Under the pieces are notes generated by a model. It made no database searches, was not told where the DNA came from, and saw nothing but the letters and a program-made list of their open reading frames with translations. Shown here one piece after another: positions 25,390 to 35,149 of a DNA stretch of 64,000 nucleotides. Numbering within the stretch: position 1 is the stretch's first letter; the number at the start of each line of letters is the position of its first letter. The position numbers were made by a program, and so were the translations under genes. This DNA is from Trichoplax adhaerens (Eukaryota > Animalia > Placozoa): positions 715,788-779,787 of the forward strand of contig NW_002060968.1 of the NCBI RefSeq assembly GCF_000150275.1, written 5' to 3'.

Positions 25390-28300
25390 ATGAAATATTT
25401 AGCCGTTGTAATCGTAAGTTCACTCTTTACTATTCATGTTGTAATAACATACCTTTTTGATTGATAGAATGATCCTGGAGTATGTAAAATTAACTATATC
25501 AGCTATCAGTACTTTCTAAAATAATGTCTGACAATTTCATCAAAGTCGGTGCTTGCAATTTTAGAATATGCAGCGTATACTTTCAAACTATTGTACGTAT
25601 TACAATACTGGAAGCTGCTGTCTACAATTATTTCAGAAACTCTTAATAGTCATTTTATGACCCGAAACTTGATAGTCATTTCTAAAAATAATTGTGTGAT
25701 GTGATGATATGTACTGAATTACTGTGCTTTCGCAGCTAAGATTTCAGTTTAGAAAGTAGTCATATTCACCTGTAATGAATTTTAAGTACCGATACTTCTG
25801 GCAGCTATTGTAATGTAATAAACAATAGCCAAATCAATTTCTAAAAGCGTTGTATTATAAATAAATTAACAAAAACTTTACTTTGTAAATTATCTTCTAG
25901 TTTGCTTTTGTCGCCGTTGCTATTGCAGGTAAGAATACGAAATCGCTAAGCCCAATACGTGTTAAACTAATACTGATGAATGTAAATTTATCAAAGAATG
26001 CAAATTTTCGCTGATACCCATTATCATTCTTAGCCAGACAGTACAAAACTCCAGAAAACTGCTTTATCATATTATGATAGTTTTAGCTGACATTTATTAG
26101 ATGAGAAGATCTATGTCCATATAGAAACGCTAGTGATTACTTATTACTATTTACTAGCAATATTGAAGTCGTAATCATTTCGGAAACCTTAAAAGTCAAA
26201 TGTCTAGTGTGAAATGTTTGTAAAATGTCTTTGAAGATACAATTTCATTTCGATCTTAAACACCTTACACCGTACTATATATCGATTGACTATTTATTCT
26301 GCAACAATAAAGGCAATCTTTAGTACTATACTCTAAATTTACTTACGTTGATATATAATGTTTTACTAACATTACTTTCTTTTCTTATATTTTTCTATCA
26401 TTAGCCCCAGCACTCCAAGAAAATAGTAAGTACAATATAGGAATTAAATTATTGCTAATCTACGTTATAATTATTCTTATTCTATCTTATTTCATTTTGC
26501 TTTTTAATATTAAATTTAAAAAATCATTATATTCCATAGTCTATTTTATGCAGTTATACATATAATTGCTACCGTGTTGTTGATAAGTAAGTCCAAATAA
26601 TTATTAAATTAATTATTAGAAATGTAATGAAGACCTTCTAAGTAGTGAATATATTTAAATTTTAAATAAGATCAAAAAGTGGTACTGCTTAGTAAATTTT
26701 CCATTATCAGAAGACAATGAAGGATAGATATTGGTTGAATTGCAGTTTATCACACAATAATCAGTGATTTACAAAGAATACATCATGTCATCCATTATAG
26801 TCACATTATTTAGATTGATATTAATTTGCATCATCTAAAAAAGCACTTAAATATACGGAAATGGACTCGTATTTCGATGTTCTTTATGGGACCGATATAT
26901 TTTCTTTATTATATAGTTAGCTATTCTTTCAAGGTAAACTAAGCCAAAAAAATATTAATTTAGATGAACAATACTTTGTAATTTATCCAGAGAATTGAAT
27001 TTCAATAGCGATATAATATTTCTGACTTCAAACAGGATTATAAATTAAAGTAGCAAATGACTGTGTTGGTACCATATTTTTGATATTCCTAGCTGATCCG
27101 AGCCGTAAGCTATGAATGATTAATCACAATAGTGAGATTTATACTTACGATTACAATGATAAATCGTGACTATATTTATACAAATTAAGGCTTGTGTTGA
27201 TTGCCTCATTTTACAGTTATTACTGTATTGATCTGCTTTCAGAAATCCGATAAAATAGGCTATGCAGTAAATATTTACTTAGATATAAGTGTTTGAATTG
27301 AGAAAAATATCATTGAAAGCTAATTTATGCAATGCAAATGTAATTTTAATGCACTTGGGCAAATCAGTACTGTTAATATATAATTTCATGTTATGATTAC
27401 TTTCTACCTTATTTAAATGCTATAAATATACTAGATGACGTTTTCAATGTAATTATTTAAAGTTAGTTTATTAACTTGCCAATATTGAAGTATTAGGTTA
27501 TTACCGTTGATCAAATATAGCGAATACAATCCACTGCTACCTTTATTATTCTATAAACTGTAAAATCTTGTAAATTTTTTACAATTAAATTGCTAAGGTT
27601 AATTAGCGGATTGCATAGCTGGCTACATCCACTATAGAATTAGTAATTTTCAAAAAAATTTTCTATTGCCTATATATTGGTAATTTGCCGTATAAAATCT
27701 TTCAAATATTTAGATAGAGAAGTATATTCGTATAAGCTCGAATGAAAGAGTTGCATAGGTTTGATATTAAGATTGAACGACAAAATTTTTTATATTTTAC
27801 GTTATCAGCTGAAATCGATTGGTTCGAAAATCGAGGAGACCACGGTAAAGAATATTAAAATCGTTTTAATTACACAAATTATGATTTGATCACATAATTT
27901 AAAGCTCCTATAATTATAGCATTATAACTAATTTTACTACTAGTTTGTCTACATATACATGCTAGAAAGGCTATTTTTAAGATGCTTGTTCTTTAATAAA
28001 TTTACAGATCAACTACCAAGTATCTAGAAAAATTAACGTAAAACAAATTTCTAAATTACTATAGTCTCCGGGATTCAGTATTCCTTAACTACCTGATAAG
28101 AATTTCACACCTTTGCTTCTACGTTAAACAACTATAAAACTATTTTTTTATTCAACTATCTGCCAAGCTTAAATACCCTTCAGCAGCAGCTATCATGTAT
28201 GAGTCATAACAGTACACAAAATTTAGCTCCTATCGGATAGCTAAATTAATACAGACATTATTTATAATTTAGAACATTTACTGAATGATTCTAGGTAATT

Positions 28301-31300
28301 AGACTACATTATATCCACACTCAGAATTATTTATAGTATCATCATTAATTGAATATCTGTAGGATATTCATCACAAGCGTTACTAGACATAACGTTATCA
28401 TCAATTAATATAAGTTAACTTATGAGAGCTCTTACTACAATACAGCATAATTTACCATAATAACATAGTAACTACTGTAATTCTTACTGTAAGTCATTAT
28501 TAGTTATCTCCATATACAAATGTTAAACACTAAATTTAGTCATTTACTCTCACGAAGGTTCGTACCGTGACAACGGAATATATGTATAAAATCATACCTT
28601 ATTTCGATTGTACTTTAAGTAGTGAAATTTGATTTCCTAAATGATTCATGTAAATTATGATACTTTATTGGTTACTTTTTGTTATCGATAATCTCGTTAC
28701 GAAAATAGTCAGCCTATTTAAGAAATATAAAAGAATACATAGTGCTAAAGTACGCTATAAAAAAGCTTATAGTAAACTTTAATTTTTACTGTTATTTTCA
28801 TGCTTGGATATTACAGTGTGTTAGATAAGTAGTTTGTCTACTTATATATGGTAGAAAGCTTATTTTAAACATGCTTATTTTTATATAAATTTATAGACGA
28901 AAGGAATGATGACCTAATGTCATGTATGTACAGCGAATATACGTTAAATACCACACTTTATGTTGATTGCACTTTAAGTGGAGAATTTCGATTTACTATT
29001 TGATTCATTTAAATTATGAAACTTCATTGGTATTCTTTGCAATCTATAATCTCGCAACGTAAACAGACAACCTTTTTAAGAAACGTAAGAGAAAAGATGC
29101 TGCTATAGTTCATATAAAGACTTAAAAGAAAATATTAATATTTACTTCTATTTTCATGCTTTGATAATTAATCATAATTATTACAATAATTGCAGAGCAA
29201 GAAATTCCACCTGGCATGGGAGGTAATAAGTGTTCAAAAATAATAAATCTTACTATTAAATTTAAGATAACTACAAAATTTTCTTACAAAGCAAGAAAAA
29301 CATTTATAATTCCGAAATGCTATTTACTCAATGTGTTTAATGCATGATTAATGCTGTATAACTTTAATTTTTTAATTGCTTTACAGTTAGTTTTTTCAAG
29401 AGAAAAAATTGTAAGTAGTGTTGTGTAACTGAACTATATTGCCGATTTTGGCCAAGTCAAGGAAAATATCTGACCATCTGACTAAAACTGTTTCAAATAA
29501 TCTTACCTTTTATCCATGTTAGCCTTTCCTAATAGAAGTAAGGCATTGTTAATATACCTCAAAGCCTATTTCATTCAAATTAAGACCGTTCTTATCGATA
29601 TCTAAACTTAAATCAATCTTTATACATTTATAGTGAACCAAATCAAGAGACAAGGTACGTAAGCTGTAATTTTTGATGTAAGAAATGGCATTTATTTCTC
29701 AATTATAAATAATGTCAATAATTTTTTTCCAATCGAACACTTTTCCATTTTTTCCGTCGCTACATTTAACCTCTAGACCGTAAGTTAAAATTTATTAGGA
29801 AGAAATAATTATAGAATTTGCAATACAGTACTTTACATAGTGGATATTTGCAATATGGCCTTCATTTACTAAGGCAAATTGATTCCCAACTAAAACACTG
29901 TTTTCAATATTTTTCTTCCATATCCTTTCAATCGTTAGCTAACCATAAGTCCATAATAAAATACAAATATCAACTGTATTTCTTTTAAAAGAGATTTTTA
30001 ATTGCTTGATATCTAATTGATAACGTTTATTTTGCTTTATAGTTAGCTTATTCAAGAAGGAAGGTAATTTTTTAGATATTTGATGGCAGAAATGAAAATT
30101 TTCAGTCATTATTTAGTTAAATAAATCAATCTTAATCAAATCATTTTCTTGATAACTTCTGAACCATTAGCTGATCAACGTAAGTCTGTAAATAATCAGA
30201 AAAATAATTTTTTACATTCATGTTAAAGTAGAATTACAGTTGCTTAATTTTGGTTAACATCATATATTTTGCCTTACAGTTGCCTTTTTCAAGAAGGAAG
30301 GTAATTTTTCGATATTTGACGACAGAAAGAAAAATTTCAATCATTACTTACTAAACTAAATCATCCTTGATCGATCTTTTATTTTGGTATCCTATCAAAT
30401 AGCTCCTACTCCCGGCTGTAAGTCTGCAATTAACTACGAAAACCAATTTTTGTATTTTATTTTGTAACAGAATATCAATAGCTAGTTATCTGATTGATAC
30501 TGTATTTTCGCTTTACAGTTGCCCTTTTCAAGAAGGAAGGTAATTTATTAAATATTTGATAGCTGAAAGGAAATTCTAATCATTATTTGGTTTACTAAAA
30601 TATTACTTATCAATCTTTTTCTTTGGTGTCCTATCAAATAGCTCCTACTCCCGGCTGTAAGTCTGCAATTAACTACGAAAACCAATTTTTGTATTTTATT
30701 TTGTAACAGAATATCAATAGCTAGTTATCTGATTGATACTGTATTTTCGCTTAACAGTTGCCCTTTTCAAGAAGGAAGGTAATTTATTAAATATTTGATA
30801 GCTGAAAGGAAATTCTAATCGTTGTTTGGTTTACTAAAATATTACTTATCAATCTTTTTCTTTGGTGTCCTATCAAATAGCTCCTACTCCCGGCTGTAAG
30901 TCTGCAATTAACTACGAAAACCAATTTTTGTATTTTATTTTGTAACAGAATATCAATAGCTAGTTATCTGATTGATACTGTATTTTCGCTTAACAGTTGC
31001 CCTTTTCAAGAAGGAAGGTAATTTATTAAATATTTGATGACTGAAAGGAAATTCTAATCGTTATTTGGTTTACTAAACTATTACTTATCAATCTTTTTCT
31101 TTGGTGTCCTATCAAATAGCTCCTACTCCCGGCTGTAAGTCTGCAATTAACTACGAAAACCAATTTTTGTATTTTATTTTGTAACAGAATATCAATAGCT
31201 AGTTGTCTGATTGATACTGTATTTTCGCTTTACAGTTGCCCTTTTCAAGAAGGAAGGTAATTTATTAAATATTTGATAGCTGAAAGGAAATTCTAATCGT

Positions 31301-33282
31301 TATTTGGTTTACTAAACCATTACTTATCAATCTTTTTCTTTGGTGTCCTATCAAATAGCTCCTACTTCCGGCTGTAAGTCTGCAATTAACTACGAAAACC
31401 AATTTTTGTATTTTACTTTGTAATAGAATATCAATAGCTAGATATCTGATTGATACTGTATTTTTTGCTTAACAGTTGCCCTTTTCAAGAAGCAAGGTAA
31501 TTTATTAAATATCTGATGGCTGAAAGGAAATTCTAATCGTTATTTGGTTTATTAAACCATTACTAATCAATCTTTTTCTTTGGTATTCTCGTGTCTGTTA
31601 ACAGACTGTAAGTCTTTAATTAACGACGGAAATCAATTTTTATATTTTATTTTGTAATAGAATATCAATAGCTAGATGTCTGATTGATACTGTATTTTTG
31701 CTTAACAGTTGCCCTTTTCAAGAAGCAAGGTAATTTATTAAATATTCGATGGCTGAAAGGAAATTTTAATCGTTATTTGGTTTACTAAACCATTACTAAT
31801 CAATCTTTTTCTTTGGTATTCTGACATCTGGCGGCAGGCAGTAAGTCTTTAATTAACGACGAAAATCAATTTTTTGTATTTTACTTTGTAATAGAATATC
31901 AATAGCTAGATGTCTGATTGATACTGTATTTTTGCTTTACAGTTCCCCTTTTCAAGAAACAAGGTAATTTATTAAATATTCGATGGCTAAAAGGAAATTC
32001 TAATCGTTATTTGGTTTATTAAACCATTACTAATCAATATTTATCTTTGGTTTCCTATCAACTAGCTCCTACTTCCGGCTGTAAGTCTGCAATTAACTAC
32101 GAAAACCAATTTTTATATTTTATTTTGTAATAGAATATCAATAGCTAGATGTCTGATTGATACTGTATTTTTGCTTAACAGTTGCCCTTTTCAAGAAGCA
32201 AGGTAATTTATTAAATATTTGATGACTGAAAGGAAATTCTAATCGTTATTTGGTTTACTAAACCATTACTAATCAATCGTTTTCTTTGGTATTCTGACAT
32301 CTGGCGGCAGGCAGTAAGTCTTTAACTAACGACGAAAACCAATTTTTTGTATTTTACTTTGTAATAGAATATCAATAGCTAGATGTCTGATTGATACTGT
32401 ATTTTTGCTTTACAGTTCCCCTTTTCAAAAAGCAAGGTAATTTATTAAATATTCGATGGCTGAAAGGAAATTCTAATCGTTATTCGCTTTACTAAACCAT
32501 TACTAATCAATCTTTTTATTTGGTATTCTGGCATCTGGCAGCAGGCAGTAAGTCTTTAATTAACGACGAAAACTAATTTTTTATATTCATTTCAATGAGA
32601 AATTTCGTATGCTTAATATTTGACTGATACCGTATATTTTGTTTTATAGTTAGTTTTTTCAGGAACGAAGGTAAATGTAAATTACTAATCCACCTGATGC
32701 TGAGGAGATTGCATAAATCAGGCTGGCAATCATTACAACACAAATTCACTTATCTTGATCTGGTATTTTAAAATTAGATGCCTACAACAAGAAAGCTGAT
32801 AAGCTCACAAATCCTAAAGGTAAGCTGTTTCAAAATTGGTAAAAGATTTTCTAGCTGCGGTAGTGCTTCAACTTGATTTTATGATATCTCCTTATGTTTG
32901 ATATCACCAATGTTTGCTTATTTTGTTGTGACATCTAGATTTGCTACGTAATTTCAACTTTCTCCTTATATCTTACTGCTCCTAGTAAATTTTAGAACAG
33001 TTTAATCTTAACTTATGAGGATGTGATTTATAGTAATAAACTAATATACAGATAAATTTTTCAAAAACAGAGGTGTGCCAATTTGAGAAATATAAAGAAA
33101 TCAGTCCTGCACTTTTGATTAAATGTTGCAAGAAATATTCCTACGTCTTGAGTACATCTAAACTTAAGCTGGTTGATATCAGTTCTAAGATTACTAATTT
33201 GTGATATTAATTTCTTTATTTATGTCCTTCATTTTCTATAGCTTCTGAAAGCTTAGCTATATGCGCAAGGCTTATCTGGTGA
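25390..33282 (+). CDS. Microexon-encoded secreted neuropeptide-like precursor (LF/FF C-terminal peptides, KK/KR processing sites), ~39 exons; 3' end uncertain
   Basis: AG/GT-flanked exons: 25390-25413, 25901-25928, 26405-26425, 27093-27104, 27809-27844, 28897-28923, 29067-29084, 29196-29222, 29387-29410, 29523-29537, 29634-29654, 29777-29779, 30043-30063, 30171-30179, 30280-30300, 30403-30417, 30519-30539, 30642-30656, 30758-30778, 30881-30895, 30997-31017, 31120-31134, 31236-31256, 31359-31373, 31476-31496, 31605-31607, 31709-31729, 31838-31840, 31943-31963, 32066-32080, 32182-32202, 32311-32313, 32416-32436, 32545-32547, 32650-32670, 32778-32819, 32939-32947, 33052-33072, 33242-33282. Joined: MKYLAVVIFAFVAVAIA|APALQENTDPSPEIDWFENRGDHDERNDDLMSYNLF-KK-QQEIPPGMGVSFF-KR-KNSFPNRMNQI-KR-QDLSLF-KK-EADQLAFF-KK-(EAPTPGFALF-KK)x4-EAPTSGFALF-KK-QDFALF-KK-QGIPLF-KK-QAPTSGFALF-KK-QGIPLF-KK-QGISFF-R-NEDAYN-KK-ADKLTNPKDLLHKFFKNRASESLAICARLIW*. 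Confidence 0.88.
28034..28572. mobile_element. 5'-truncated family B solo-LTR-like element inside the peptide gene
   Basis: Shares taacgtaaaacaaat(c/t)tctaaattact...gtctccgggattca and the terminal gttcgtaccgtgaca with 19130-19565; the left TG terminus is missing. Confidence 0.75.
30270..32680 (+). repeat. Tandem array of ~233-240-bp units (~10 copies); each unit is intron + short exon + intron + 21-nt exon
   Basis: cagTTGCCCTTTTCAAGAAG(G/C)AAGgtaat recurs at a 239-bp period (30519, 30758, 30997, 31236); a 473-bp higher-order period appears later (31709 to 32182, 31943 to 32416). Confidence 0.97.
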
Positions 33283-35149
33283 ACGAGCTTTAAATAGGTA
33301 ATATTTATTTACCAATTTGCTTTAGTAGCGACCTATAGTCCACCTCTTACAAATCTTGCTCTTCAAATTTTTATCAAAGGTTGCTTGACTACTAATTATG
33401 AGAGGCACAAACTAGTTCATTTTACACGAATCTGAAACTTGACGCTAGATCATTTTGAGATAGAATTAAATTGTTATATGGTAGTCTATACGCAGTGCGG
33501 TGTATTTCTGTATATGGCATCTGACTTTATAGTACTGTAAAGCTACCTCTAGGCGTAAAGTAAGCAGTAATCTTATAACTTTCATTATATAGGCATATAT
33601 GGTAGCATATATACAATTCGGGCCATAAACTGTTCTTTAACGGAATAATTCGTCAATAGAAGCAGTACTAGTACAAAATTTTATTTCTGTATTTGTTATG
33701 CACATTAAAGGCCGATTTAGTCGCTTGCAAAGCGCTAAGGCGTAAGCAATATTTTAATACAATTAAAACTTCTTTTATAGCGAAATAAGAAATACATGTC
33801 CCATTGTAGCATCGATTAATTTAAATGGTAGATTGGCTGGAAATTGTTGTCAATTTCGTCTTTACCCATAATTTTAAGATGTGCCACTTTTCTAGATTTT
33901 AGCTACGTCAATAGTAACTCGAATTATTCTATTTATTATAGTAGATCGCGCTGGCATGGCTGCACCCGATAAGATTGAATATATAAATGAACCATAAAGT
34001 AGACGATTAAGCACTTGCTATTTAAAATTCAAGAATCAAATAACAAATTTTACTTTGTTAAGCGATAGTAGATGTTTTGGTGTAATTAGGACAACAATGG
34101 AATACATTTGGGTAACCATTTTATCTAAATCTTCATCAAAACTCTATTTATGTAGTTGTCCCTTTATAGTGATATTCTATTCGTTGCATGTATCGTTAAT
34201 CTCAGTGTACTGTAAGTTATAAATAGCGCTCTTGTCCAGGAATAACTGATGTACAAGTACAATAACGTCTTCATGTTATCAGTATTAGCCCGAATGTAAC
34301 CATCAAAGCTATGTAATTATTGTCGTAGGTGTCATAAATCGAAATAAACCATACGATTAACTGTAACTTTCTGTCAAATATTTTATGTGGTGTTTTTCAT
34401 AAAAAAATGAGATCATTAGTTGCATCGAACCTACGATATAAAACAATCAAATAATCAACGCTAGTTTCGCAAATAGTAATCTACGTTTTACTATAGGTAC
34501 AGCACAATGATCAGCATTCATGGATGACCACCTGCGATAAAAATTTTATAGGGATAATCTATATTGTTGACAAACTAAAATAATGATGAATGTATAGTGC
34601 AGTACTTTGATAAGATATGTTACAGGATCATAACGCTAAACAGTCACTACGGATATATGAACGGTAAGTTTTAACGCAATCTAGATTGAACAAATTTAGA
34701 ACTTGATAGTGCGTAGCTGTCTTCCAAAACCAAGTATGAGGCATATAAGGCAACATTTACAAGTTCTTTTAAGAAATGAGGCACGTAAAGAAAATTCTTA
34801 GAAATTTTGATTTCACTTATTCGCTTCTACTGTAATATATTCGCTCAGTAACCGCAGTACAAATATCCAGGATTAGGAAACGTCAGTATCATTCTCGTAA
34901 TATACATTCTTTTTCAGACAATGAAAAAGTACATAACTATATCTCCTTGCACTTATTAATTACCGTTGCAACAAATCCTTTACGTAATTAGAATATAATC
35001 AATATTTAACTAGTAAACAAGGTACACAGAGATAGTTATGACTTATACAAAAATAGATGTTTCCTGTCGGAAAATTTCATTCCACGTCATTACAATAGTA
35101 CATCCAAACAGAATTCTTCTATGGCATACTAAATGATATGTCCATTCTA

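Follow-up and report, generated by a model that had tools for sequence, protein, structure and literature searches.

Three-nucleotide exons in a gene with tandem repeat units for a predicted peptide precursor of Trichoplax adhaerens

A 64,000-nucleotide stretch of the Trichoplax adhaerens genome (contig NW_002060968.1, positions 715,788 to 779,787; hereafter the window, AT-rich, G+C approximately 30%) raises the question of whether exons only three nucleotides long can be used as ordinary exons in a non-bilaterian animal. The gene concerned lies on the forward strand and appears to encode a precursor of short secreted peptides. Five of its positions carry the pattern AG-NNN-GTAAGT, namely, ACC at 29777-79, ACT at 31605-07 and GCA at 31838-40, 32311-13 and 32545-47, and a canonical AG acceptor and GT donor flank all of them (5/5). 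The first-pass annotation, made from the letters of the window, had proposed five 3-nt exons with a perfect GTAAGT donor that determine the identity of the encoded peptides, and all five motifs were found where it had placed them. The corresponding exons, with the RNA runs described below, are as follows:

29777..29779, forward strand: 3-nt exon ACC, which completes GAC and CTT and gives Q-D-L-SLF; RNA joint, flanked by AG/GTAAGT.
31605..31607, forward strand: predicted 3-nt exon ACT, giving Q-D-F-ALF; architecture as in the RNA-supported GCA units.
31838..31840, forward strand: 3-nt exon GCA, giving Q-G-I-PLF; loose ends of contigs from X4 and X5.
32311..32313, forward strand: 3-nt exon GCA, giving Q-G-I-PLF; loose ends of contigs from X4, X7 and X5.
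32542..32547, forward strand: 6-nt exon CAGGCA with a tandem CAGCAG acceptor, giving Q-A-G-I-SFF; the GCA noted at 32545-47 is its 3' half.

The motif AGNNNGTAAGT matched nine times on both strands of the window, and five of these nine matches were on the forward strand inside 2.8 kb. In 100 shuffles the mean number of matches was 1.93 and the maximum was 5, and the observed nine were never reached (0/100). A tandem array of 239-bp units extends along the forward strand at 30267..32526 (approximately 9.5 units, 91% matches, Tandem Repeats Finder), with one 21-nt exon and one exon of 15, 3 or 6 nt per unit. The 21-nt piece reads …cag-TTGCCCTTTTCAAGAAGGAAG-gtaatt, and the 15-nt piece, approximately 100 nt after it, reads …atag-CTCCTACTCCCGGCT-gtaagtct. 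The claim that the 3-nt exons occupy the slot of the 15-nt exon was borne out by an alignment of eleven units (A1), in which each site takes this slot with the donor GTAAGTCT kept; the replacement by AG-NNN-GTAAGT occurred in four units and once further upstream (ACC).

Use of these sites in RNA was assessed with contigs assembled from four public runs (X1, X4, X5 and X7; four studies, two organism labels), which were placed on positions 27700-33690. Spliced joints came from X4, X5 and X7 (three studies), the last of which is recorded as RNA-seq; results on joints and loose ends are given as found among the contig matches listed, which are a part of the total. Exons too short for the aligner were read from the sequence left over at a joint, where neither side covers it, or from loose ends of contigs. 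A chain of GT..AG joints with word depths of 50-1400 was obtained from X4, X7 and X5, whereas X1 covered all bins evenly with zero joints and therefore behaves like DNA. The joint 29654->30043 has 'ACC' between its sides (X5, depth 53), and thus the exon at 29777-79 is included. GCA at 31838-40 is included as the loose end 'TTTCAAGAAGCAAGGCA' (…CAAGGCA) before exon 31943-63 (X4 and X5), and GCA at 32311-13 as the loose end '...AGCAAGGCA' before exon 32416-36 (two contigs of X4, as well as X7 and X5); the letters preceding exon 32416-36 are TTTCAAGAAGCAAGGCA, as for the GCA at 31838-40. Both inner GCA exons were recovered in two or three independent studies and ACC in one. The other exon lengths of the gene were read in the same way: the 9-nt exon 30171-79 as 'CTGATCAAC' between the sides of joint 30063->30280 (X7 and X5) and the 15-nt exons as 'CTCCTACTTCCGGCT' between joint sides (X4 and X5). 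Consequently, mature-looking RNA confirms a 3-nt exon at three of the five sites, so that the proposal of five such exons held for ACC and for the two inner GCA sites and failed for the fifth site, which is 6 nt long on the window allele. No skipped form was present among the listed joints and loose ends of the four runs; a longer exon from an upstream acceptor, the other outcome that the first-pass annotation had named as contrary to its proposal, is used at the fifth site.

Other sources of these letters were considered and rejected. Genome searches covering 105.6 Mb in 1414 contigs found the array of 239-bp units at a single locus, on the contig of the window (C1389), and exon 34 of the gene (32650-70) was likewise single-copy; since neither was found elsewhere in the genome, the RNA is not explained by a paralogous array. 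That ACC or GCA came from donor or acceptor slippage at the 21-nt exons is excluded by the adjacent bases, which are GTA and CAG. At the ACC site itself, two variants were observed in X1 and X7, one within the exon (29779, C>A, ACC to ACA, by which QDLSLF would become QDISLF) and one at donor position +5 (29784, G>C, GTAAGT to GTAACT).

What, then, is spliced at the fifth site? The joint 32436->32650 holds 'CAGGCA' in X4 (depth 591) and X5 (depth 249), and the same six letters were found in X7. The site reads ggcAGcAGgca-gtaagt, compared with ggcGGcAGgca in the sister units, and the exon has 6 nt on the window allele because this G-to-A difference made an AG 3 nt upstream and the first AG is used. 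Hence, the last peptide, previously given as Q-G-I-SFF, reads Q-A-G-I-SFF on this allele. The 3-nt form was also detected in X4, as a contig with CAAG-GCA-TTAGTTTTTTCAGGAATGA (depth 863), and was linked there to a T in exon 34 (GGAATGA) where the window has C (GGAACGA). Because the GCA form is linked to this T and exon 34 is single-copy in the assembly, the simplest reading is that the X4 culture contains two haplotypes, one with a 3-nt and one with a 6-nt exon. NAGNAG wobble of one allele at CAGCAG, in the last unit and perhaps elsewhere too, would fit the tandem acceptor ggCAGCAGgca and the high depth of both forms in the single run X4. However, in X4 each form has its own base in exon 34, 16 nt downstream of the short exon (T with GCA, C with CAGGCA); X5 and X7 show CAGGCA only; and exon 34 has a single copy, all of which make wobble of one allele unlikely.

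The ACT site resembles the GCA sites in its signals: its intron has a branch-point-like CTAAT at -38 and lacks another AG in its last 70 nt, and the donor is GTAAGTCT. Judging by these signals, ACT is likely to be included as a 3-nt exon. The 21-nt exons on its two sides have the same sequence as two others. Each 3-nt exon fixes two residues because it lies in phase 1, so that two of its bases finish a codon and the third opens the following one; the first-pass annotation had described this completion of two codons, and its translations Q-D-L-SLF, Q-D-F-ALF and Q-G-I-PLF are correct for the gene model.

The alignment also bears on how such exons could have arisen. Over their whole length the 3-nt units align as homologues of the 15-nt units, and they differ from them by a 6-bp deletion of the old acceptor (aatAGc) together with dense substitutions in the former exon, and they have a new AG 3 nt before the unchanged donor. 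The donor is common to the 15-, 9-, 6- and 3-nt exons and the acceptor position alone differs; therefore, migration of the acceptor has shortened the exon and, with it, the N-terminus of the peptide from 10 to 8, 7 and 6 residues. In this scheme, a 6-bp deletion took the old acceptor from a 15-nt exon and a new AG 3 nt from the donor now delimits a 3-nt exon; in the last unit an additional G-to-A change shifted the acceptor 3 nt upstream and yielded a 6-nt exon. In the 239-bp units, a 21-nt exon encodes one part of each peptide and a short exon (15, 9, 6 or 3 nt) its N-terminal part, and the length of the short exon sets that part of the product (10, 8, 7 or 6 residues).

How exons of this size may be recognized is suggested by the surrounding introns. 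Those flanking the 3-nt exons are short (101-263 nt) and the donor is perfect from +1 to +6; in the introns that precede the 3- and 6-nt exons, CTAAT stands at -38 and the final 70 nt hold no further AG, and splicing uses the first AG that follows this branch-point-like sequence. On this reading, the core spliceosome would include the ACC exon and the two inner GCA exons constitutively, like any other exon. U1 base-pairs with the final three bases of the exon and six bases of the intron, and U2AF35 contacts the AG; since 3 nt cannot hold U2AF and U1 together, the two introns would be removed one after the other, by intron definition. Partly spliced contigs were of two kinds. Two contigs cross the joint 32547->32650 and extend 38 letters or more to either side of it; the other kind has the joint 31840->32416, flanked by 42 letters or more in both directions, which may be the joint 32313->32416 of the twin unit placed on a look-alike. 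No joint of the opposite kind, with the upstream intron gone and the downstream one kept, was listed. As both joints retain the upstream intron and have lost the downstream one, they suggest that the downstream intron is removed before the upstream one.

The first-pass annotation had compared the sites with the regulated neural microexons that depend on the eMIC domain of SRRM3/4 and had recommended a search for an eMIC-containing SRRM homologue. A profile search of the genome with the C-terminal family of SRRM3/4 (PF15230, SRRM_C) gave no candidate at E <= 1, in a six-frame, exon-wise design in which an intron-split domain could be missed. The cwf21 domain had a single genome match (C1414:428114-428221, 27.2 bits), which presumably belongs to an SRRM2/Cwc21-like splicing factor. 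By direct reading, no TGC, corresponding to the UGC enhancer, was present in the 20 nt upstream of any of the five acceptors. Because the C-terminal domain of SRRM3/4 was not found in the genome, the process looks like constitutive core splicing rather than a programme of the eMIC type. The comparison with regulated neural microexons thus found no counterpart in a SRRM_C match, an upstream UGC or a listed skipped isoform, whereas the more general expectation, that ultra-short exons are spliced in an early-branching animal, agrees with the presence of 3-nt exons in RNA of a placozoan.

An alternative to constitutive use is that the 3-nt exons are cell-type-specific cassettes, an early-animal counterpart of eMIC-regulated microexons that would toggle between QD/QG and QV peptides. 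Skipping would keep the reading frame since all the exons are symmetric and in phase 1, minor isoforms can escape assembly into contigs, and the contig with the joint 31840->32416 may be read as a skip of four exons. Nevertheless, no skipped junction was listed in the four runs, SRRM_C had no genome match while cwf21 was matched, UGC was absent upstream of the acceptors, and the eMIC domain has been reported as an innovation of bilaterian ancestors (PMC8797185). Regulated cassettes were therefore considered very improbable, and constitutive inclusion was retained as the preferred reading.

The sites belong to a gene that extends from 25390 to 33297 and beyond and comprises 37 exons chained by joints, with a further exon of the 3' untranslated region (UTR) at 33942. 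Every exon from exon 3 on starts and ends in phase 1; exons 3-36 are all of phase 1-1 and of 3-81 nt, 32 of these 34 do not exceed 36 nt, and the longest encodes 27 residues. The listed junctions, joined and checked for frame by script, form one open frame of 253 codons. Apart from the array units and the exons given above, its parts are as follows:

25390..25407, forward strand: exon 1, with the start codon and the first part of the hydrophobic N-terminus; model-based.
25901-25928 and 26405-26425, forward strand: exons 2 and 3, joined to exon 4 in contigs.
27809-44, 28897-923, 29067-84, 29196-222, 29387-410, 29523-37 and 29634-54, forward strand: exons 4-10, pro-region and first LF/FF peptides.
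30043-63 (21 nt), 30171-79 (9 nt, CTGATCAAC) and 30280-300 (21 nt), forward strand: exons 12-14, joint 30063->30280.
32650-70, 32778-819, 33071-151 and 33242-297, forward strand: exons 34-37, Cys-containing C-terminal part, TGA stop at 33280-82.
33942..33967, forward strand: start of the further 3'-UTR exon; the loose end behind 33297 matches the window only there.

Exons 2, 3 and 4 are joined in X4 by the loose end 'CTATTGCAGCCCCAGCACTCCAAGAAAATA' before 27809 and in X7 by the same sequence with one single-nucleotide polymorphism. Exons 4-10 are connected by the joints 27843->28896, 28923->29194, 29220->29385 and 29410->29634 with the letters between them, and exons 34-37 by 32817->33069 and 33151->33242 in X4, X7 and X5. 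The 3' UTR is itself interrupted, by a splice 15 nt past the stop codon (33297->33942) into a G+C-richer exon. The 1383-nt intron that separates exons 3 and 4 contains two micro-exon-like pieces with good splice signals, 26917-26933 and 27093-27104 (reading SYSFK and LIRA in frame); they were rejected as exons since the contigs do not use them and 26425 joins 27809 directly, and they may be decayed or alternative exons. Within the 1052-nt intron that follows, the segment 27900-28700 had word depths of 1100-29000 in X1 compared with approximately 40-60 elsewhere. Contigs have loose ends there at 28085, 28106 and 28517-28550, and the segment looks like a dispersed repeat or mobile element. A 16-nt intronic insertion (TAGAGATAGTTCATAT) relative to the window was found at 29114 in X4, an indel polymorphism between cultures. 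A Pfam scan of the five longest open reading frames of the window returned zero families.

What the gene encodes was read from the joined frame. The precursor comprises, in order, a hydrophobic N-terminus (MKYLAVFAFVAVAIAA) that by eye resembles a signal peptide, a short acidic pro-region, 15 peptides and a Cys-containing C-terminal part. The 15 predicted peptides end in LF or FF and each is followed by KK or KR, the last one by an RN...KK tail. They include EAPTPGFALF (four copies), EAPTSGFALF, QAPTSGFALF and EADQLAFF as well as QDLSLF, QDFALF (predicted, as it depends on ACT), QGIPLF (two copies) and QAGISFF; those starting with Q probably become pyroglutamyl peptides. Their ends recall the known LF peptides of Trichoplax, DDSQDGYALF, NPSNIGHPLF and pyroGlu-QPGHALFR (10.1101/360925; LF_precursor rows of Table S5, PMC10580291), which have been detected by mass spectrometry and are behaviourally active (10.1101/360925). 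The known LF gene lies elsewhere, at approximately 253-255 kb of contig C1414, where exons read DSQDGYALF and DSQGYPLFRKD; a known LF or LFNE precursor in the window was rejected, as stretches coding for GYALF, HPLF and SLFNE are absent there. On the minus strand of C1414 (approximately 253.3-254.5 kb) this LF locus consists of 33-nt phase-0 exons with one peptide each, two adjacent ones being 238 bp apart. None of 15 query strings from the window precursor occurred in the part of the 2023 placozoan peptidomics tables that was searched (PMC10580291), none of the predicted peptides was found in the relevant searchable literature, and the gene is apparently undescribed.

This peptidomics result, the lack of an amidation glycine and the cysteines of the C-terminal part would suit a secreted repetitive protein of another kind, for example, a mucus-like or antimicrobial one, in which the dibasic sites stay uncleaved. 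On the other hand, the spacing of KK/KR is strict, the C-terminal motif is that of the LF peptides already known to act on behaviour, and the peptidomics data would be expected to miss these peptides if the database used for them lacked the gene model; a product of this kind was therefore considered quite improbable. It is highly probable that the gene encodes a highly expressed LF-type precursor of multi-copy peptides secreted and released between KK/KR sites, and that its 3-nt exons are constitutive and derived by acceptor migration. A wider proposal is put forward tentatively, as a possibility somewhat short of an even chance: the core spliceosome would define codon-length exons constitutively, with no helper of the eMIC type and with ordered, downstream-first splicing; migration of the acceptor from 15 through 9 and 6 to 3 nt in a young array would be a live route for diversifying the N-termini of signalling peptides; and 3- and 6-nt alleles would be segregating in cultured animals.

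Several points weigh against these conclusions. The RNA evidence consists of contigs and not raw reads, in which minor isoforms such as skipped ones would be lost and depths are not quantitative. The contig with the joint 31840->32416 is perhaps a misplaced twin of the unit at 32311, or a skip of four exons, and two joints (three contigs) are thin evidence for the splicing order. The 3- and 6-nt forms of the last unit may reflect NAGNAG alternative splicing rather than alleles, and inclusion of ACT is a prediction, with no corresponding match among those listed. The signal peptide and the cleavage sites were read by eye, and the peptides of the precursor are absent from the searched part of the peptidomics table.

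Taken together, the locus brings together, in a small natural system, ten near-identical units whose short exons measure 15, 9, 6 or 3 nt, and in which the minimal size of an exon and the order of intron removal may be probed, and it provides several 3-nt exons that are spliced efficiently in an animal in which the bilaterian microexon enhancer was not detected. A highly expressed precursor of the LF type is added to those of the neuron-less Trichoplax. Gene models blind to microexons would exclude such peptides from mass-spectrometry databases, and with respect to annotation this is a further case of real coding sequence unseen by standard predictors and aligners.

Comparison with known systems places the individual features as follows. 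Microexons are defined as exons of 3-27 or 3-30 nt and are easily missed by aligners and gene predictors, and 3-nt exons are known from human MAP4K5 and cytohesin-1, Drosophila homothorax and plants (PMC8632122, PMC6314551, PMC7392893, PMC7935315, PMC8831610). Since such exons are documented in humans, Drosophila, plants and the micro-exon genes (MEGs) of schistosomes, the exon size itself is not new. For placozoans, the microexon literature yielded only a mitochondrial cox1 case. The exons of the window gene share with known 3-nt microexons the canonical AG/GT sites and the insertion or re-specification of one or two residues; however, the latter are mostly single, often alternative and located in large bilaterian or plant proteins, whereas here three exons in RNA and one predicted exon occur in one tandem array of a non-bilaterian peptide precursor, apparently constitutive and recently derived from 15-nt exons. 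This combination of several apparently constitutive 3-nt exons, a young tandem array and a signalling-peptide precursor outside the bilaterians appears to be new in the searchable literature. The neural microexons of the eMIC programme are similar in being very short and in belonging to transcripts with a secretory or neural-type role, but that programme is bilaterian-specific as reported, while the window gene lacks a match to the regulator domain, the UGC motif and listed skipping. The MEGs of Schistosoma mansoni, which encode secreted products and have symmetric exons of 3-81 bp (10.1101/2023.06.21.545858), resemble the window gene in that the coding region consists almost wholly of short symmetric exons in multiples of 3; they have long introns and variable exon skipping, in contrast to introns of approximately 100 nt, 239-bp tandem units and no listed skipping in the window gene, and the likeness is one of architecture, with no homology expected. 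The closest parallel within the species is the Trichoplax LF precursor (TrH2_TrispH2_008150), which also has multi-copy ALF/PLF peptides followed by dibasic sites, micro-exons and a unit of approximately 238 bp per peptide. Nevertheless, each of its peptides has a single 33-nt phase-0 exon and its dibasic sites are RK, whereas the window gene uses two phase-1 exons per peptide and KK sites; the two genes lie on different contigs (C1414 and C1389, respectively), and their likeness is one of C-terminal motif and architecture.

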